A stretch of 64,000 bases of DNA, from assembly GCA_004764695.1 (NCBI GenBank), contig SMSO01000025.1, positions 1,240,001 to 1,304,000 on the forward strand, in the 5' to 3' direction. The notes beneath the pieces are model-generated. The model worked only from the letters and a program-made list of their open reading frames with translations. It was not told the origin of the DNA and ran no database searches. How positions within the stretch are numbered: the first letter of the stretch is position 1; the number at the start of each line of letters is the position of its first letter. The translations under genes and the position numbers were made by a program. The DNA is from Schizochytrium sp. TIO01 (taxonomy: Eukaryota; Protista; Bigyra: Labyrinthulomycetes). This document shows, piece after piece, positions 55,208-64,000 of this stretch.

Positions 55208-57340
55208 TTAGTCTGAAGAAAAGCTGGAAAGATGACTCTGCAGACGAGCAATCAAAGCGTCCTTTTCGTAAATTTGCTTTTTAAGTTGCTCGACTATTTG
55301 ACGGCAACGTTTATTGGAGCATCCATGCGAAGTGTGAGATGGACTGTCAAACGAAGTACCGTTTGTGCTGCTGAAGCTACTTTTTGACTCGACTCGCTGA
55401 TCAGAGATACGGTCTTCATTGGTCGACGAGAAATCAGATCCGATACTGCAAATTTCGATGGCGTCTTGTGCTATTTCTGATACAGATGCATGTACATCAT
55501 GTGAGAGTTCCTCCCATGCGGAGGATGTTTCAACAGGAATTTCCTCAGCTTCGATGGTGTCTTGAATTGGGCTCATTGGGCCGACCAAAATTTTGTCGTC
55601 CTCGGCTGGGCTTTGGAGCTCAGTAGATAGAAAAGAATCGCCTTCAAGGCGCTCCTGGGCATCAATACCTTGATGATCATCATGAACAGCTGCATCATAA
55701 TTGTTCCCTGTCCGATTTCTGGTTTGTTCACAGCTAGGTGAAACATTTTCATTCAACGTCTCATTGACTTCTAATTTAGGTGGTGGAAGTCGTTTTTGTA
55801 GACATTCACTGCCTGAACTCTCGCTATCGTCATTGTCATTCCCATTGTTATTATCATAATCACTTCCACTACTGTCGTCATCATCATCCAAAGTATCCAG
55901 ATAGGCCGTAACAACACGGCGTCTTTCAAGGCTTGATGTGCGTTGAAACGGTGGAACTCGGGGTGGACCATTGAAAGATTTCAAGGGTGAAGCTGGCAAC
56001 TCGTCATGACCTGAGTCAATGTCTTCACAACTTGACTCCTCATCGTCATCGTCGCTGGCTTGAAAACTTTCCATTTTCGATGTATCCAGGATAGAATTAC
56101 TGAGTAATCCGTTGCTATCCTGTCCATCAGGACTGGTTGAAATACCCTGTACTTCCCGTGTTAGCTCATCAATTTCCTGGGTCAGGATTCGCAATTCGCT
56201 ATCACGGCTACTGAATTGTTGTTGACGTAGTCCAGTGGAGAAGCTTTTTAGAGGGGTTGTCAACTTGTTATCTGAGACATCCTCCTCATTGCAATCTTCC
56301 TCATTGCTGCCATTTGTCGCATATACAGGTTTGTCACGAGGGGTGGTAGGTGTATCAACTTTGAAATTTGCTGGCTCGCTATTGTGCTGCAGGCCGTCAC
56401 GCAAGGTATCCATTTGTTCATGACAGTCGCGTAAAAACGAATGGTTCATACAATGGGCAGCAGACGGTCGTGCATGGGGGTCCAGCTGTAGCATATCAGT
56501 GATTAAGTTTACACAACTTTGCAAAGAATCTGATCGCCCATCACCGCCAAGGCCTTCATATTCAGCAATAAGGCTTGGTGCAAGAGGTTTTGTTGCTCGG
56601 GATGATGGCAACTGTAGGTGTTGTTGCAGAAGCATTGTAGAACCTTGCGGCCAAGACTTGGAAGTAATAGGACCAATACAACTGGTAATCCTTAGCATGT
56701 GTTCTAGCCGATCTTGAGCAGGAAATAAAGGTGTTAAGGTCAAACATTCAGCTATCACACAGGCTGCGGCCCAAATATCTACTGGAGAATTATAGACGCT
56801 AGCACGGAGAACAAGCTCTGGTGCTCGATACCATTTCGTAGAAACATAAGATGTGAAAGGTGGGCGTGACCTGACGTCTCGTGCAAGTCCGAAGTCACAA
56901 ACCTGAATGCCGTCATGAAAATCCATAAGAAGGTTCTCAGGCTTGATATCACGATGAAAAAAACCATATCGATGCATATATGCTAGAGCTGAGACTAGCT
57001 GATAAGCCCACCGAGCAATAACATCTAAAGTCACAAACCGACCAGCTTGCCGAACCTCCTTAAGACGCTGGTGCAAGTTGATTGGGTGGTAATCAAAGAC
57101 AAGATAAAGCTTTTTGTTTTCGCGCACAATCTGCCGAAGAACTACAATGTTTGTGTGTTTTGAGCCAAGCTGCCGTAATGCTCGAACCTCACGAAGTTTC
57201 AAACACTCGTCCCACGTCTCATATCTTCGGTTGGAAATTACTTTTACAGCAACGCGGTCTCCAGATGCGCGTTCAATGCACTCTGTTACCTCGCCAAATG
57301 CGCCTTGTCCAAGGTGGCGGATTACATCGTATTTGTCCAT
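55208..57340 (-). CDS. MAK/ICK(CILK1)-like RCK-family Ser/Thr kinase with an acidic tail and terminal coiled coil
   Basis: LGQGAFGEV, VAVK, TWDECLKLREVRAL, FFHRDIKPENLL and DFGLARDVRSRPPFTSYVSTKWYRAPE. Confidence 0.9.
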   Translation of the reverse strand: MDKYDVIRHLGQGAFGEVTECIERASGDRVAVKVISNRRYETWDECLKLREVRALRQLGSKHTNIVVLRQIVRENKKLYLVFDYHPINLHQRLKEVRQAGRFVTLDVIARWAYQLVSALAYMHRYGFFHRDIKPENLLMDFHDGIQVCDFGLARDVRSRPPFTSYVSTKWYRAPELVLRASVYNSPVDIWAAACVIAECLTLTPLFPAQDRLEHMLRITSCIGPITSKSWPQGSTMLLQQHLQLPSSRATKPLAPSLIAEYEGLGGDGRSDSLQSCVNLITDMLQLDPHARPSAAHCMNHSFLRDCHEQMDTLRDGLQHNSEPANFKVDTPTTPRDKPVYATNGSNEEDCNEEDVSDNKLTTPLKSFSTGLRQQQFSSRDSELRILTQEIDELTREVQGISTSPDGQDSNGLLSNSILDTSKMESFQASDDDDEESSCEDIDSGHDELPASPLKSFNGPPRVPPFQRTSSLERRRVVTAYLDTLDDDDDSSGSDYDNNNGNDNDDSESSGSECLQKRLPPPKLEVNETLNENVSPSCEQTRNRTGNNYDAAVHDDHQGIDAQERLEGDSFLSTELQSPAEDDKILVGPMSPIQDTIEAEEIPVETSSAWEELSHDVHASVSEIAQDAIEICSIGSDFSSTNEDRISDQRVESKSSFSSTNGTSFDSPSHTSHGCSNKRCRQIVEQLKKQIYEKDALIARLQSHLSSFSSD

Positions 57341-58070
57341 TCTATCTCAGCACAACAGAAGATCCAATCGCTTATAAAGTAATCCAGTTCTTGAAGAGCC
57401 TGCGCCAAGCAAGCTCCTACCGCAAGATTCACTACGTCGTCACAGTGAATATGTAATCCAAAGTTGCAAATCGTTCTCAGGCTTCTATTTCTTCCTCTCG
57501 TGTCGCAATTACTATGATGGTCGCTGCTACCAAACCTATGATCTAACACTGCAACGCAGCGTTAGAGCAGCAACGCCAACGCGGTTGCCTCAGGCTTCGC
57601 CGTGGAGCCAAGGCTTGCAAAAGGCTTTGCGGCATCATTCTGTGCCTTCACTGGACTAATCGCATGTAGGATACTTAACACTTATATACCCAAAAGCAAG
57701 CATGTGCCAAACAAGACACCACAAATACACGACCATCTTGATGCTGAGTGTGGCGTACACACCTCGTTTAACGGTCCTTTGTAGGGTGACCTTAGACATT
57801 TTACCTATTTACCCTTGCTTATTTCCTTCCCTCTTTTTTATGTTAGTTGTCAACCAGTCTCGTGCCTTCTCCTAAAGCACTAATAACACTCAGGGATAGA
57901 TGCACTACACGGAGGGCTATACGAAAGGGAACTTGATTCATAGTGCAAATTCGCCAAGACCAGGAACAAGTTGCAAATGTCTAAACTAGGTGAACAGGGA
58001 AGAAATTCTTTCAAATACAGGCAGGACAAACAGTGCAGCAGCAAGGAAGGCTGCGAATAGTGCAAGAATC

Positions 58071-58703
58071 ATGAGCAAGCGCGAGTACCTGCACCCTCGA
58101 TATATGCGAGACGAAATTGATAAACTTCTCGCAGAGTCCCGAGAGCTTGGGTTGAAAGCGAAGGATCGAAGAGATACGCTCTGTGAGCTCCAACAAAAGC
58201 GCGCTGATATTGCGAAGCAAACGCAGAGAGCAAACCTCGAGCTAATGCAGCTAGTCTCTATCCTTCGCCAGCTAGCCAAAGAGCGCAAAGACAAGGAAAG
58301 CTCATCGCAGAATATTAAACCTTCAAGTCACCAAAATATTGTTTCCAATACCACTTCAAATATTCCTCATATTAAGAGTACAGAGTCAAAAGCTGCAACC
58401 TCATTGGATGCTCGCACCTCCTCTCCATCAAAGTCTGACGAAAAGACGCCACCAGTGATCTGTATATCTGAGATTGACGCAAACCTTCAGATTATGTTCG
58501 ACAGATTATTAAGACCTGAAACCTTATCTCCATCCAAGAGACGTCCAACAACGCCCAAGGCTCCGAAAGAACAAGGATTATTATTGCGCCAGTCTTCAAG
58601 CAGGTCCAACAGGGCCGGGTATGATAAGCTTTTGGATAAACCTCTTAATGAAGGGTCATTAGCTCTCTTCCGAAAGCAACGACAGCGAGAGAAGCAAGTA
58701 TGA
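58071..58703 (+). CDS. Small protein with an N-terminal coiled coil and a basic Ser-rich tail
   Basis: The open frame runs 57990-58703 and the first ATG is at 58071. The coiled-coil-like segment is DEIDKLLAESRELGLK...LRQLAKERKD. The start and any upstream exon are uncertain. Confidence 0.6.
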   Translation: MSKREYLHPRYMRDEIDKLLAESRELGLKAKDRRDTLCELQQKRADIAKQTQRANLELMQLVSILRQLAKERKDKESSSQNIKPSSHQNIVSNTTSNIPHIKSTESKAATSLDARTSSPSKSDEKTPPVICISEIDANLQIMFDRLLRPETLSPSKRRPTTPKAPKEQGLLLRQSSSRSNRAGYDKLLDKPLNEGSLALFRKQRQREKQV

Positions 58704-58910
58704 GATACAAAATTTGAGAGAGAGTGAATACGTCTGAATTAATCTAAATGTTTATGGTAAAATATTATCTAATTACGAACAAAATGGCTATAAATTCAAA
58801 TGGAGTGTTGCAAGTTGCATTAAAAGGAACAGATTATCTGTTCAATTTTTGAAACTTCGCAAAGATTAGAATCATTTAAAGTCTAGTAGATTCATTCATT
58901 CTTGAGCGTC

Positions 58911-61900
58911 TTACTGATCTTTTTCAGATGGCAGCTTACCAGGTTCCTTGAGAATCATAATCCGCTGCTCAGTCATGTCTTCAATTGCATAACGAACACC
59001 CTCACGGCCAATACCAGATTCCTTGACACCACCATAAGGTTGAGAATCAATGCGAAAGGATGGAACAGAATTAATTACAACACCTCCTGCCACAATCTTC
59101 TCGAACGCGTAGTGAGCCTTGGACAAACTGTTGGTAAATACTCCGGCCTGAAGTCCAAAGCGAGAGTTGTTTACTTCATCTATGACAGTTGCGTAGTCAG
59201 AATAGGATTCCAAGCATACAACCGGGCCAAACACCTCTTCTTGGTAGATGGTACAATCGTGTGGGACATTCTCAAGAACAGTAGCTTGCACAAAGACACG
59301 ATCCTGCTTGTTTCCACCAGCAAGAATGCTTGCACCCTTGTCATGGGCTTCTTTAATCCAATCAGCAATACGATCTGCATCCTTCTCACTAATCACAGGG
59401 CCTAAAAATGTATCATCCTTCTTTGGGTTACCCATTTTGAGGCTTTGGACCTTCTCGACAAATGCCTTCTTAAAACGATCATAGATTGACTCGTGCACAA
59501 ACAGCCGCTGTACCGAAATGCAACTCTGACCACTTTGGTAGAAGCCTCCAGTCACGACGGATCCAACCACAGTATCGAGCCCTTCGGCTAGGTCATCTAC
59601 AACGCAAGCGGCGTTCCCGCCAAGCTCGAGAACAACCTTTTTCTTGTTGCACTTGGCCTTGAGTTCCCAACCAACATTGGCAGAACCGGTGAATGAGAGC
59701 AGCTTGAAACGATCATCAGTGGTAAGAGCATCCCCGGACTTGCGTGTGCAAGGGAGAATGCTAAATCCCTCTTTTGGCATGTCAGGGTCATTTGACAGAA
59801 TTTCGGCTACCAGCAATGCTCCAAGGGGAGTTCGACTAGCTGGTTTCACTACGAAAGGGCAGCCAGCGGCAATAGCTGGAGCAACCTTGCAAGCGAGCAA
59901 GTTAAGAGGGAAGTTGAACGGAGAAATCATACTCACTGGGCCAATAGGGAAACGTTTGACAATACCCTGGTAGCCATGGCAGCGGGGGGCAATGTCCATA
60001 TCACCCGCCTCCCCAAACATGCGTGTAGTCTCTTCTGCTGCAATTTCAAAATTGATAATCAGCCGATCAACCTCTCCACGAGCATCGCTGATCGCTTTAC
60101 CATTCTCGATGGTGGTCATCATAGCAAGTTCTTCACGACGACGCTTAGCCTCTTTAGCAACGTTCATAAGGATGCGCTTTCGAACATAGTGCGGCAGGGC
60201 AGCCATCTTCTCGGCACCTGTAGTAGCTGCTGTGTGAATTGCAGTTTCCATATCAGACTCCGTGGCTACAGCTACCTTACAAAAGACTTCGTTTGTGAAC
60301 TTATCAACAACCTCAAGATCTTCATTTGCATAAACTGGTCTTCCTACAAGGTAGAATGGCACACTGCTACCCTTTTGGATGCTGAATTCAGATGAAGAAT
60401 CATCCTCTTTGTTCTCTTCCTTCTCTTTAGAGGACGAGGAATTCGTCGCACTTTCCTTTTTCTTTTGTTGGTCTGTAGATTCCTTTGACTTCTCACCATC
60501 CCCATTCTCTCGAGTTGACTCACACCCTTTCGACTCTGAAGACGCAGACTCAGAGCGCCGTACTTTGTCTAGGCGCTTGTTACAGTCCTCTGAGACATCA
60601 GCTTCGCTCTCTTTTGCCTCCTCTTTGGTTCCGGCAGGCAAAGAGTCACCAAGGCTGAGATCAGCACCAAATTCTTCACAGACCCGACGCAAAATCTCAG
60701 CAGCTTCAGAGGGGATGCCCTTAAGCATTTGGGAAGCCCACGCATAAGTGATGGGTACCTCTACCACATGCACGCCCTTGCTTGCAACGCATTGCTTGAG
60801 AATGTCTGAGAATTCCTCTACTTTGGTAACCCGGTACCCCTTAGCTCCAAAAGATTCTGCATGCTTGACGAGGTCTGGGTTCCGGAGGTCAAGATTGAAT
60901 TCATCAAATCCCATGCCTCCTTGTTTCCACTTGATCATGCCAAGTGCGTTATCATTGAGCACGAGAACTGTCATGTTGAAGCCATACTGTACAGCTGTAG
61001 CGAGCTCTGCACTGTTCATAAAGTAGCCACCGTCACCACATACAGCTACAACAGGCTTATCTGGATAAGCGAGGTTCGTACCGATTGCATTCGGCAAACC
61101 AGCACCCATAGTAGCCAAAGCGTTGTCAAGCAACACGGTCTGGGGCTCCACAGCCTTGAAGGCGCGAGCAATCATAACCTTGTACAGGCCATTATCAAGG
61201 CTAAGAATGCAATCGTTTGGGAGAACTTGGCGCATGTCAGCAATTACACGGGAAATATTCATAGGAAACTGGTCGTCATCCTCGCCACGCTTCATGCATT
61301 CGTCCGTGTATTCTTTAATGCGGTGGAATTCAGGGACATCAAAGGTCTTGTTCTTAGCAAGGAGTTTTTCCTTGAGCTGCCACACAGCATTGGCACAGTC
61401 GCCGACAACTTCTACTTGAGGATAGTAAGTTGAGTCTACATGAGCAGCTTGAAAACTTACATGAATGACCTTGCGGTCTTTGGCTCCAGCAGACATGATA
61501 AATGGAGGTTTTTCCGTTGTATCGTGCCCAACCATGATAATCACATCACTAATGTCGAGCGCGGCGTGAATGTAATCCTTGGAACTAATTGCGGCACAGC
61601 CTAGGAAGTACTTGCTCCGTTCATCAACAACACCTTTGCCCATTTGCGTGGAGACAAAGTGAATTTTCAGCTCGTCTACAAATTCTCGCACTGCGCGACG
61701 AGCATGGTGCCGGTTAGCCGCAGCACCAATGACCATGATTGGACGCTTTGCATTCATGAGCAATTCGGTGGCCTCCCAAGTGCCTTTGTCATCAGTCACC
61801 GGACGCCGCACAGGAGTAGGCTCGAACAGAGCAAAGTTGGTCATTTCCGACGCAATGTCTTCCGGGAGCTCCAACAAAGTTGGTCCTTGCTTCTCAGTGG

Positions 61901-62348
61901 TAGCCTCGCGAAATGCGCGGCGTACCATGGAAGGCACCATGTTACCATCCGTTATGGTTTTGGCATACTTTGTCAAAGGCTGGTACATGCCAACAATGTC
62001 TACAATCTGGAACTCTGCTTGCTTCGTATGACGAATTCCCTTCTGGCCTGTGAGAAAAACACAGGGCATACCGCCGAGGTACGCAAAAGCAGCAGCCGTG
62101 GTGAAGTTTGTGGCGCCAGGGCCGAGAGTAGAAAGTGCCACTGCCTTTACTTGGCCTGTCAACCGACCAACGGTGGAGCAAATAAAGCCCGCAGCCTGCT
62201 CGTGACGTGTAAGGATCACCTTGATTTTTGACTTGCGCAGGGCTTCTAGGACGTCAAGGTTTTCCTCTCCAGGAATGCCCACGACGTACTCAACACCTTC
62301 ATTTTCAAGTGCTTTCACCAGCAACTCGCTCACCTTGATCTTCGTCAT
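58911..62348 (-). CDS. Fusion of a ThDP-dependent acetolactate-synthase-like enzyme (2-oxoglutarate decarboxylase-like) and an ALDH21-type aldehyde dehydrogenase (SSADH-like)
   Basis: Uninterrupted 1145-aa ORF. The N-domain (62348 to about 60745) has GIPGEENL, TRHEQAA, STLGPGATN, LDNALATMGAG and GDGGYFMN...NDN. A linker of about 125 aa rich in E/S/K follows. The C-domain (about 60362-58930) has SPFNFPLNL, KPASRTP, FTGS, LELGGN, GQSCIS, EEVFGP and PYGGVKESGIGREG. Confidence 0.93.
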   Translation of the reverse strand: MTKIKVSELLVKALENEGVEYVVGIPGEENLDVLEALRKSKIKVILTRHEQAAGFICSTVGRLTGQVKAVALSTLGPGATNFTTAAAFAYLGGMPCVFLTGQKGIRHTKQAEFQIVDIVGMYQPLTKYAKTITDGNMVPSMVRRAFREATTEKQGPTLLELPEDIASEMTNFALFEPTPVRRPVTDDKGTWEATELLMNAKRPIMVIGAAANRHHARRAVREFVDELKIHFVSTQMGKGVVDERSKYFLGCAAISSKDYIHAALDISDVIIMVGHDTTEKPPFIMSAGAKDRKVIHVSFQAAHVDSTYYPQVEVVGDCANAVWQLKEKLLAKNKTFDVPEFHRIKEYTDECMKRGEDDDQFPMNISRVIADMRQVLPNDCILSLDNGLYKVMIARAFKAVEPQTVLLDNALATMGAGLPNAIGTNLAYPDKPVVAVCGDGGYFMNSAELATAVQYGFNMTVLVLNDNALGMIKWKQGGMGFDEFNLDLRNPDLVKHAESFGAKGYRVTKVEEFSDILKQCVASKGVHVVEVPITYAWASQMLKGIPSEAAEILRRVCEEFGADLSLGDSLPAGTKEEAKESEADVSEDCNKRLDKVRRSESASSESKGCESTRENGDGEKSKESTDQQKKKESATNSSSSKEKEENKEDDSSSEFSIQKGSSVPFYLVGRPVYANEDLEVVDKFTNEVFCKVAVATESDMETAIHTAATTGAEKMAALPHYVRKRILMNVAKEAKRRREELAMMTTIENGKAISDARGEVDRLIINFEIAAEETTRMFGEAGDMDIAPRCHGYQGIVKRFPIGPVSMISPFNFPLNLLACKVAPAIAAGCPFVVKPASRTPLGALLVAEILSNDPDMPKEGFSILPCTRKSGDALTTDDRFKLLSFTGSANVGWELKAKCNKKKVVLELGGNAACVVDDLAEGLDTVVGSVVTGGFYQSGQSCISVQRLFVHESIYDRFKKAFVEKVQSLKMGNPKKDDTFLGPVISEKDADRIADWIKEAHDKGASILAGGNKQDRVFVQATVLENVPHDCTIYQEEVFGPVVCLESYSDYATVIDEVNNSRFGLQAGVFTNSLSKAHYAFEKIVAGGVVINSVPSFRIDSQPYGGVKESGIGREGVRYAIEDMTEQRIMILKEPGKLPSEKDQ

Positions 62349-64000
62349 TGTTCTGCTTTCACAAAAGCGTATCTTTACAAATCGCTATATCCTTCGTCTG
62401 AAGAACTCCAAGCGTAGCGTCTTTCTCGTGTTTTTCGTTTTTTCTGTAATTATGCAAAGCAGCTTTAGTATCCTTCTTCTGCTTACAGGAGGTCCAAGTC
62501 GCGCTCGCACCGCCACACGGACTTCTCAGCCGAGTGTGCCAACGATCGAGTTTCAGATTTGCCGACCACCCCTCGCAGGTCGTCGAGTCTCTTTCCTGTC
62601 GTCACGTTCTTCGCGACTGTCGTTCTGCAGGTCCTCCAAATAAAGAACCCAAGGTCTTCCTCCACAGAACTCTGCGCCCAGTTCCGCTCGAGGCTCTGCT
62701 TCGTTTCATGAAGCTCATGTAATGCACCTATCCGAGGATATCCTTCAATCTCAACAGACTGAGCTTGCCATGCCATTATCTGCGGTAGCACAGCACACCT
62801 CACCATTCAGGGTCATAGACCAATACCATCACTGAGCAGAGGGCCTCTGACGCCGATTCTGCTCCGACTGATTGTGATTGCTCGCAGCGTACATGCACGG
62901 CCGTCTGGGATGCCTGGTATGGGTTGAGCTCGGGCTCGGGAGTGGTTGAGCGAAGTGCCGAGCAGGCTACCCAGTCCCACTGACCGACAAAGCGACGCTC
63001 GCCTTCGCCGGAGCCTCGCAGGTGTCGAGGACGAGCAAGTTGGAGGCGAATCTCAGCCGCTCTTGCCAGCAAAATCTTCAACCCTCAGGTTCTAAGGCTT
63101 GGCCAAGGTTCGAGCTTTTTGCGGTGCATCTTTTGTGGAAGCGAAGTCAGTTGCAAGAACCTCAGGCCTACGATGACGACAGTCATGACGGCGAGGAGGA
63201 GGAGGAGAACGTCAATGATTTCATCGTGATGACTGCTACTCTGCTGTGAGCCACTGCGAATCGCAAGGGGCTGAAGCTCCTGGCGCAGCTGGCGTGCTGC
63301 TCGCAAATACGAGATTCGCAAATCCTCGCAAATACAAGCAAGGTTTGTAACCTCGAAATATTTACCTAGAAGCTTGGAGTGCCTCATGGAAGCAACGTCC
63401 ATCGTACATGAATGTTATCTCGATTATGCGGGGAAACTTTTGAGAGGTATTTTACTTGAGATCTTTTTGGATAGGTGTTGGCGAAGCACACGTTGCTGTA
63501 GACAAGCAAGCAGCGCCTGCGGCAAAAGGGGCTATGTATGCCGAGGTTTTGAGAACCTTAACATCAATTTAATTAAAAAAAAAAACAAAAAAAAAAACAC
63601 TCTAATAAATTGCCTAAATCATTTTTATTTATTTATTTTAAATGCACGTACAGGGCATACAGCGTCTGAGGACATGGAAATGCATTTTTATATCAAAATA
63701 TACAGATACAGGCATTTCCAACCAAACTTTTAACGTGGGTCGAAACTCAAACCAAGACCATTCGTTGTTTGAGCCAACAAGAGTATTAGCGTGTACCTAT
63801 CTACCTGCAGCGTTGGTTGGTCCTGCAAGTCTTGCAAAAGAGGGTACTAAACAGGGAGTGACGCGTAATCATGTAAGTAAGATTTTGTATCACTTGATAT
63901 TTTGGTCTAAGATTGAGATGTCTCCGTAGAATATATCTATCAGCCACGGCAAGTGCAAAGTTATGGAGGTAATAGCTGGGTTGCTGCCTAAGCCAATGAC

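Follow-up and report, generated by a model that had tools for sequence, protein, structure and literature searches.

Schizochytrium sp. TIO01, a thraustochytrid, carries a gene that joins a thiamine diphosphate (ThDP)-dependent enzyme and an aldehyde dehydrogenase (ALDH) in a single polypeptide of 1145 residues. The gene lies at 58911–62348 on the minus strand of the window, which is the whole 64,000-nucleotide stretch that was analyzed (contig SMSO01000025.1, positions 1,240,001 to 1,304,000; assembly GCA_004764695.1). On balance, the protein is likely to act in the cytosol, decarboxylating 2-oxoglutarate to succinic semialdehyde and oxidizing this aldehyde to succinate with NADP+, and sequence comparisons support its descent from a bacterial two-gene module in which a ThDP gene is followed by an ALDH gene. 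The chemistry is probably that of the known cyanobacterial OgdA/SsaD bypass, with the one-protein fused form as the new element. The substrates, cofactor, cytosolic location, oligomeric state and physiological role discussed below are what we infer from the open reading frame (ORF), the expression-like contigs, the family membership of the two halves, their diagnostic residues, purifying selection and the pairing of the genes in bacteria.

One gene, apparently expressed, encodes both enzyme halves

The ORF starts with ATG and runs through 1145 codons without an intron or an internal stop, and a stop codon stands in frame 12 codons 5' of Met1. Four Pfam domains, each full-length against its profile (E 1e-27 to 1e-135), made up an intact ThDP enzyme and an intact ALDH, as the initial annotation, made from the sequence letters alone, had claimed. 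The features are listed below with their support; MaKGD is the alpha-ketoglutarate (2-oxoglutarate) decarboxylase (KGD) of Microcystis, and residues after an equals sign are those of PpALDH21, the ALDH21 of the moss Physcomitrium patens.

58911..62348, minus strand: complete coding region for the fusion protein, 1145 residues plus stop, without introns (ORF, four Pfam domains, joint-free contigs, identical transcript product)
61986..62336, minus strand: TPP_enzyme_N, ThDP pyrimidine-binding domain, residues 5–121 (Pfam)
62199–62201, minus strand: catalytic Glu50, in TPP_enzyme_N (aligned with MaKGD Glu50)
61374..61775, minus strand: TPP_enzyme_M, central domain of the ThDP enzyme, residues 192–325 (Pfam)
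60756..61196, minus strand: TPP_enzyme_C, ThDP diphosphate-binding domain, residues 385–531 (Pfam), which also has Asp466 and Met414 (alignment)
61032–61034, minus strand: Asp439 of the GDGG motif, in TPP_enzyme_C (alignment)
61179–61181, minus strand: family-specific Lys390 (alignment with MaKGD Lys386)
60924–60926, minus strand: family-specific Lys475 (alignment with MaKGD Lys471)
60345..60728, minus strand: inter-domain linker, residues 541–668 (composition and predicted structure)
60390–60653, minus strand: predicted disordered core of the linker, residues 566–653 (pLDDT 27–41)
58962..60323, minus strand: ALDH21-type aldehyde dehydrogenase domain (Aldedh), residues 676–1129 (Pfam), with Arg762 (= Arg121), the cofactor motif Lys835-Pro-Ala-Ser838-Arg839, Arg869 (= Arg228), Glu908, Tyr937 (= Tyr296), catalytic Cys943 and Arg1099 (= Arg457)

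The charged linker, first placed at about 60740–60365, was Ser/Glu/Lys-rich and acidic, with S, E, K, D, T, G, N and Q making up 69% of its residues and a net charge of −9. In an AlphaFold2 model with 16 fusion homologues in the alignment, both enzyme halves were folded and the linker core had a predicted local distance difference test (pLDDT) score of 27–41. Neither the length nor the sequence of the linker was kept among the fusions. Met1 stood only 4 residues ahead of the conserved ThDP domain, leaving no N-terminal extension, and no peroxisomal targeting signal type 1 (PTS1) was found at the C-terminus (...LPSEKDQ), in agreement with the earlier remark that both a targeting peptide and a PTS1 are lacking.

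Contigs from the Logan resource, taken from four studies, were mapped onto 57600–63400; we call them transcript-like because their 'RNA' label is a guess. In each of three studies, one contig of 3.7–4.0 kb spanned the ORF, ended just beyond it and had no joints. The longest, from X1 (record 2), was 4016 nt and covered 58749–62764 on the minus strand, implying a 5' leader of ~416 nt and a 3' trailer of ~160 nt; those from X3 and X6 covered 58945–62660 and 58774–62674, respectively. The adjoining genes were on separate contigs with 5–10-fold different depth, and the intergenic DNA was partly uncovered. In addition, a transcript product in MMETSP that is marked 'complete' (P0001, 1145 aa) was identical to the fusion protein. 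The spanning contigs and this transcript argue against two separate genes, the outcome that had been named as fatal to the fusion.

Between strains, we found 16 synonymous and 2 non-synonymous coding differences. The two that alter an amino acid (G544D and K631E) fell in the linker and all 13 changes in the catalytic domains were silent, indicating that both halves are under purifying selection. The closest named orthologue was a protein of Hondaea fermentalgiana (P0002, 1153 aa, 80% identity).

Since the bacterial gene pair described below often lies one stop codon apart, a one-base error of assembly or sequencing could in principle mimic a fusion by merging adjacent genes, and a bacterial contaminant might likewise be suspected. 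However, the same open frame, with a 128-residue linker that bacteria lack, recurred in independent contigs of at least three studies and strains, and the identical MMETSP product also argues against an artifact. The architecture is common to Hondaea and about 20 other eukaryotes, and its place in the host assembly (64 Mb, 37 contigs) is a contig of at least ~2 Mb, beside eukaryote-type genes. An artifact is thereby effectively refuted.

The ThDP half belongs to a family that includes proven 2-oxoglutarate decarboxylases

The N-terminal half scored 710.3 bits on NF006187 (PRK08322, 'acetolactate synthase large subunit'; curated cut-off 509 bits), matching profile positions 2–530 of 548, and was the only product in the host assembly above this cut-off. 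NF006187 was the best-scoring ThDP family, followed by the AlsS models NF006378 (374 bits, cut-off 510) and TIGR02418 (338.7 bits, cut-off 551), while biosynthetic acetohydroxyacid synthase (AHAS; TIGR00118) gave 341.6 bits against a cut-off of 538. The initial annotation had placed this half in the 'acetolactate synthase'-annotated group that contains OgdA and not with AHAS. The scores (710 versus 342 bits) uphold this, but within the family the half lies in a subclade of its own and not in the OgdA clade itself.

Within this family, MaKGD decarboxylates alpha-ketoglutarate and acts on none of five other 2-oxo acids, including pyruvate (Li et al. 2023, PMC10418658). Its identity with the products of sll1981 and A2770, which are likewise alpha-ketoglutarate decarboxylases, is 77–85%; its E50A mutant is inactive, mutagenesis supports Glu50, Met410, Asp435 and Asp462 as catalytic or cofactor residues, and docking places Lys386, Lys471, Gln254 and Val382 (and Leu467) on alpha-ketoglutarate (PMC10418658). 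We deduced four MaKGD peptides from the published mutagenesis primers and used the back-translated pattern of one to scan metagenome contigs. Several ORFs matched 49–50 of the 50 positions of the four peptides, kept the MaKGD numbering exactly (E50, M410, D435, D462) and scored 877–882 bits on NF006187 (loci L098:2115-3815, L111:687-2366, L127:7532-9184 and L109:6028-7686). Bacterial members of the fusion protein's own ThDP subclade scored 870–930 bits, so NF006187 covers both proven decarboxylases and the fusion clade. The name 'acetolactate synthase' looks wrong for at least the KGD-type part of NF006187, because the cyanobacterial KGD type is among its best-scoring members and has no action on pyruvate in the literature.

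Glu50, Met414, Asp439 and Asp466 of the fusion protein occupied the columns of MaKGD Glu50, Met410, Asp435 and Asp462, and these residues were kept in every fusion-clade member compared. Lys390 and Lys475 (MaKGD Lys386 and Lys471) were invariant in 14 KGD-type sequences, the fusion protein and 54 other fusion-type sequences. AlsS and AHAS, which share the three-domain ThDP fold, lack both lysines, with Tyr or Gln at the first position and Gln at the second. Glu28 showed the same pattern, being invariant in the KGD and fusion-type clades but missing in AlsS and AHAS. Identity of the ThDP half was 49–55% with the compared proteins of Proteobacteria, planctomycetes, Verrucomicrobia and other groups, and 25–30% with AlsS and AHAS. 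Its nearest solved structures carry acetolactate synthase labels; the closest of them (13bb) was considered as a KGD-type structure and rejected. Cluster names for its relatives are generic ('acetolactate synthase', 'benzoylformate decarboxylase').

As a side observation, the host has two near-identical AHAS-like genes ~7 kb apart on a different contig from the fusion gene (G000:C30:3676013-3677701 and G000:C30:3683093-3684775; L002 and L003), with open frames of 691 and 692 aa. The pair looks like the result of a recent tandem duplication of the gene for the biosynthetic enzyme.

The ALDH half has the substrate and cofactor residues of moss ALDH21

The best solved match of the C-terminal half was PpALDH21 (5mz5, E 1e-169), followed by three Burkholderia-type structural-genomics ALDHs. 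PpALDH21 is a cytosolic NADP+-dependent succinic semialdehyde dehydrogenase (SSADH) in which Arg121, Arg457 and Tyr296 hold the substrate carboxylate. In chain 5mz5_A, whose numbering is the native one plus 18, Arg139, Arg475 and Arg246 (native Arg121, Arg457 and Arg228) aligned with the arginines of GEVDR, PSFRID and LPCTRK in the fusion protein, and Tyr296 fell on GGFYQSGQSC. These three arginines had been predicted at substrate and phosphate positions, and the resemblance to ALDH21 had been noticed from motifs; the alignment, the top structural match and the clade placement described below agree with both, and all sequence motifs quoted at that time are present in the fusion protein.

The catalytic Cys943 and Glu908 were kept in the ALDH half. 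The cofactor motif KPASRTP was the same in both proteins, with Ser replacing the NAD-type Glu of KPAxxTP, as had been pointed out. Arg869 aligned with Arg228, which we take to be a determinant of NADP+ preference, and sequence comparison thus suggests the use of NADP+. The Arg/Tyr/Arg triad did not vary among the 18 eukaryotic relatives, and the bacterial partners kept it almost without exception.

Side by side with these matches, the highest NCBIfam scores of the ALDH half, with cut-offs, were 418 bits for lactaldehyde dehydrogenase (650), 354 bits for SafD (700) and 321 bits for SSADH (646). The last of these was the classical GabD/ALDH5 model TIGR01780 (320.8 bits), and phosphonoacetaldehyde dehydrogenase gave a sub-threshold 298 bits. 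Separately, we observed three ALDH paralogues in tandem within ~11 kb of the host genome (G000:C36:1876653-1887948; L209-L211), which scored 376–380 bits on the SSADH model, below its cut-off.

Fusions occur in several eukaryotic lineages and gene pairs in many bacteria

We searched for the same fusion elsewhere and for adjacent gene pairs in bacteria, as had been suggested, and both were found. Full-length four-domain fusions were present in liverworts (Riccia, Calypogeia), ferns (Ceratopteris), streptophyte algae, chlorophytes (Coccomyxa, Elliptochloris, Ostreobium, Bryopsis) and the red alga Rhodosorus, and several protist-like metagenome proteins shared the architecture. A second set of ~1016–1048 aa with short linkers came from Candidatus Melainabacteria/Obscuribacter (P0035, P0038, P0043, P0046, P0059, P0071 and P0074). 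The idea that the fusion is specific to this host or unique was therefore abandoned: it extends over green, red and stramenopile lineages, and Melainabacteria evolved it in a second event. Among 1.84 billion cluster representatives searched exhaustively, P0029 and P0045 were the only full-length fusions, meaning that all fusions reduce to about two lineages when clustered at 50% identity. A putative unfused melainabacterial ThDP protein (P0247) turned out to be a mid-gene fragment.

Bacterial loci were scanned with an alignment of the fusions and the patterns LDNALATM and RHEQAAGF, and the best 80 loci were kept; cyanobacterial KGDs lack LDNALATM, and the 80 included neither a cyanobacterium nor Obscuribacter. 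In 56 of these loci, from at least 10 phyla, a comparable ALDH gene stood beside the ThDP gene. In the loci examined, the halves were separate and adjacent, with the ALDH gene directly downstream of the ThDP gene. The two were often in the same frame with a single stop codon between them (L010, L020, L022, L026, L067, L070, L071, L077, L079, L084), so that one point mutation would create a fusion.

Two related types of partner were distinguished. Type A was ALDH21-like and 51–55% identical to the C-terminal half of the fusion (e.g. Paraburkholderia, Paraglaciecola, Xanthomonas, Erythrobacter, Trueperaceae and Pirellulaceae), and type B was 33–39% identical to it (e.g. Arcobacter, Marinifilum, Calditrichota, and the fused half of Melainabacteria). 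Both kept the Arg/Tyr/Arg triad, except for one Tyr-to-Phe change among 15 type A sequences. The melainabacterial half was also compared with SsaD of PCC 7002 and did not match that type, its nearest structures being of the ALDH21 type. Overall, ThDP genes of the NF006187 family occurred in three arrangements: KGD with an upstream SsaD-type gene (an NF006915-like NADP-SSADH, in cyanobacteria), the fusion type with a downstream ALDH21-type gene, and either ThDP type with a type B ALDH that has the same triad. An example of the last is a gammaproteobacterial KGD-clade gene (L214) with a type B ALDH 9 nt downstream. Around the bacterial pair, a search for other conserved neighbors, transporters and additional pathway genes included, turned up nothing beyond antisense shadow ORFs and housekeeping genes that were lineage-specific. 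That SSADH-like partners were recruited repeatedly, and no further pathway genes with them, is in keeping with a self-contained step that connects two central metabolites.

An ancient eukaryotic fusion and a second event in Melainabacteria

In the maximum-likelihood ThDP tree, the fusion protein fell in a separate clade with support of 100, and the KGD clade had support of 96. AHAS formed the outgroup. In the ALDH tree, which was built without PpALDH21 itself, the C-terminal half joined the C-terminal halves of plant fusions and bacterial type A partners in a clade with support of 99. The eukaryotic sequences grouped together in both domain trees (support 91 and 88) beside bacteria with type A pairs, and the two trees were congruent. 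The ThDP tree followed the order chlorophytes, streptophytes, red alga and stramenopiles; the ALDH tree was less fully resolved.

The melainabacterial fusions nested among bacteria with type B partners. A single clade of melainabacterial and eukaryotic fusions, a grouping named after the tree had been seen, was rejected (delta lnL 360.5, p-AU 3.9e-06), and the melainabacterial fusion is an independent second event. The bacterial module would have fused once, early in a eukaryotic lineage, and would now persist in green, red and stramenopile groups. Adjacency of the genes in many phyla and the congruent trees support the earlier suggestion that an acquired bacterial pair was fused; however, the eukaryotic fusion was ancient and is common to several lineages, and not specific to this host.

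The gene was apparently split again in some lineages, as unfused versions in the diatom Seminavis and in Sphagnum nested within the fused ones. In Seminavis robusta, the halves are separate proteins of 571 aa (P0121) and 488 aa (P0301), each recorded on a 29,978-bp contig, and the two genes are probably neighbors. The Sphagnum protein (P0079, ThDP only, 722 aa) nested inside the fused streptophyte proteins, which include the liverwort fusions P0010 and P0011; a Marchantia sequence (P0076) was a partial model. Given this stand-alone moss ThDP protein within the fused clade and the known stand-alone ALDH21 of mosses, mosses may have split the ancestral fusion. Succinic semialdehyde for plant ALDH21 might then come from decarboxylation of 2-oxoglutarate in addition to the shunt through gamma-aminobutyric acid (GABA).

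Comparison with characterized enzymes

The cyanobacterial bypass consists of OgdA/KGD and SsaD (A2770/A2771 in Synechococcus PCC 7002, sll1981 in Synechocystis, MaKGD in Microcystis). The ThDP half shares with OgdA/KGD its NF006187 equivalog membership and the counterparts of Glu50, Met410, the GDG Asp, Asp462, Lys386 and Lys471, and as in the OgdA/SsaD system the decarboxylase is encoded with an NADP-type SSADH and the proposed net conversion is from 2-oxoglutarate to succinate. In contrast, the fusion has LDNALATMG where KGD has SNGFAAMG. Its ALDH21-type partner is ~30% identical to the SsaD type and belongs to another ALDH family, and the ALDH gene of cyanobacterial-type loci is separate and upstream, whereas in the fusion the ALDH is the C-terminal half. 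The parallel drawn initially with OgdA beside an SSADH thus holds for adjacency but not for the family or the position of the partner. Furthermore, cyanobacteria lack 2-oxoglutarate dehydrogenase (OGDH), which the Schizochytrium host has.

Compared to moss ALDH21 (PDB 5MZ5/5MZ8), the fusion has all of KPASRTP, Arg121, Arg228, Tyr296, the catalytic Cys and Arg457, and its C-terminal half shares one clade with those of the liverwort and fern fusions. Moss ALDH21 is a stand-alone protein of ~500 residues that the literature interprets only as a GABA-shunt enzyme, whereas the ALDH here is covalently preceded by a ThDP decarboxylase-type half. The Melainabacteria/Obscuribacter fusions (e.g. P0071 and P0043) have the same domain order, a ThDP half of the same subclade (50–53% identical) and the triad. 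Their linkers are only ~10–40 residues long, compared to 128 here, and in their type B ALDH halves the Ser-Arg pair and Arg228, which in ALDH21 are associated with NADP+, are mostly missing. The decarboxylases of Euglena (KGD) and mycobacteria (Kgd) have the same proposed reaction, and that of Euglena likewise feeds an SSADH, but both belong to the 2-oxoglutarate dehydrogenase E1 (E1o) family and are not AHAS-like. In the host, E1o is represented by a gene other than the fusion.

Proposed function and alternatives

In the proposed mechanism, the N-terminal ThDP/Mg2+ module would decarboxylate 2-oxoglutarate non-oxidatively to succinic semialdehyde and CO2, and the C-terminal ALDH21-type module would oxidize the semialdehyde to succinate while reducing NADP+ to NADPH. 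The disordered acidic tether, of about 90–125 residues, would hold the modules close and at a ratio of 1:1, with no physical tunnel implied. MaKGD and PpALDH21 are both tetramers. Channelling of the aldehyde between the halves, which had been proposed initially, drew no support from anything tested: a long, disordered tether joins the halves, and bacteria normally have the pair unfused. The upstream in-frame stop, the position of Met1 next to the domain and the lack of a PTS1 point to the cytosol, where PpALDH21 has also been described.

Several observations weigh against a role in 2-oxoglutarate decarboxylation and NADP+-dependent oxidation of the product. The ThDP half is only 36–40% identical to the KGD type, and the KGD clade, the fusion clade and the single true AlsS sequence in the tree formed an unresolved trichotomy above the AHAS outgroup, which leaves the sister relation unsettled. 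Between MaKGD and the fusion protein, the pocket residues change from Gln254 to Ser, Val382 to Asn, His385 (a ThDP contact) to Tyr and Leu467 to Met; positions 254, 382 and 385 distinguish the two clades, and a Tyr465-to-Leu change is seen in the fusion protein itself. The substrate role of Lys386 and Lys471 comes from docking into an AlphaFold model and not from mutagenesis, and we found no report in the literature of an assay of any member of this ThDP subclade. On the ALDH side, no NCBIfam model passed its cut-off, and the Km of PpALDH21 for succinic semialdehyde is rather high (181 uM). Finally, the host has a canonical OGDH E1 (1045 bits) and a further, classical SSADH gene near the threshold (636.8 bits on TIGR01780, cut-off 646), so no metabolic gap demands the fusion enzyme. 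Given the canonical E1, it would be a parallel route or bypass and not a gap-filler, giving NADPH in place of NADH plus GTP.

The main rival keeps the two-step logic and changes the substrate to another anionic 2-oxo acid, such as 2-oxoadipate, oxaloacetate or sulfopyruvate, with the ALDH oxidizing the corresponding omega-anionic aldehyde (glutarate semialdehyde, malonate semialdehyde or sulfoacetaldehyde). The separation of the ThDP subclade from the assayed KGDs, with its different residues at 254, 382 and 385, leaves room for this, as do the sizeable sub-threshold scores of the ALDH half on the sulfoacetaldehyde (SafD), phosphonoacetaldehyde and lactaldehyde models; the two lysines and two arginines indicate only a distal anionic group on the substrate. 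However, the Arg/Tyr/Arg triad, without variation among the 18 eukaryotic relatives, is exactly that by which PpALDH21 binds the carboxylate of succinic semialdehyde. The type B ALDH behind the KGD-clade gene L214 ties the chemistry of the fusion clade to that of KGD, and the lack of conserved transporter or pathway genes fits a link of two central metabolites better than a specialized catabolic route. We therefore regard a different anionic substrate as rather unlikely.

Much less likely still is that the ThDP half is a carboligase, acetolactate-synthase-like in a catabolic role or otherwise C–C-bond-forming, fused for co-regulation to an ALDH of general stress or detoxifying function. Names given in databases (e.g. 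'acetolactate synthase large subunit'), the labels of the nearest solved structures and the stress induction of ALDH21 genes in mosses would be in keeping with it. Yet the AlsS and AHAS scores fell below their cut-offs, and the characterized NF006187 members are strict decarboxylases that do not act on pyruvate. The ThDP gene also pairs with three ALDH lineages, was fused twice independently and has a tree congruent with that of its partner, a pattern better explained by a shared metabolite than by coincidental co-regulation. Taken together, the reading that we favor, with some reserve, is a cytosolic, NADP+-dependent conversion of 2-oxoglutarate to succinate.

Implications

We found no paper on the fusion or on the non-cyanobacterial gene pair in a literature search; the fusion sequences are already public under misleading names. 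If the proposed activity is true, the 'cyanobacterial' bypass would extend to thraustochytrids, diatoms, green and red algae, liverworts, ferns and many heterotrophic bacteria, the name 'acetolactate synthase large subunit' of NF006187 would mislead for a large curated family, and plant ALDH21 would gain a direct upstream partner. One gene for the conversion of 2-oxoglutarate to succinate plus NADPH could also be a compact part for metabolic engineering; OgdA features in work on 4-hydroxybutyrate polymer production.

In thraustochytrids that produce docosahexaenoic acid (DHA), the source of NADPH for lipids is debated (PMC6923395), and the fusion may be a concrete candidate. During lipid accumulation in Aurantiochytrium sp. 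T66, an 'SSDH' gene (T66005295.1) rose 62-fold, from 4.2 to 259 reads per kilobase per million (RPKM), and a glutamate decarboxylase (T66004665.1) rose 9-fold (PMC6923395). That study discusses NADPH and lists two 'SSDH' genes without sequences (PMC6923395); either might be the fusion gene. We consider it doubtful that the broadest form of the proposal holds in full, namely that the module of ThDP and ALDH21-type enzymes, a fusion in eukaryotes and an operon in more than 10 bacterial phyla, is a widespread and unrecognized OGDH-independent route yielding NADPH, that plant ALDH21 is its second half and not just a GABA-shunt enzyme, that mosses split the ancestral fusion, and that the thraustochytrid enzyme measurably feeds cytosolic NADPH during lipid and DHA accumulation.

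Neighboring genes

Two ORFs were located downstream of the fusion gene. The one at 55208–57340 (minus strand) encodes a protein-kinase-like product of 710 aa with a long acidic low-complexity tail, and the one at 57990–58703 (plus strand) encodes a Ser/Lys-rich product of 237 aa and lies on a transcript-like contig of its own.

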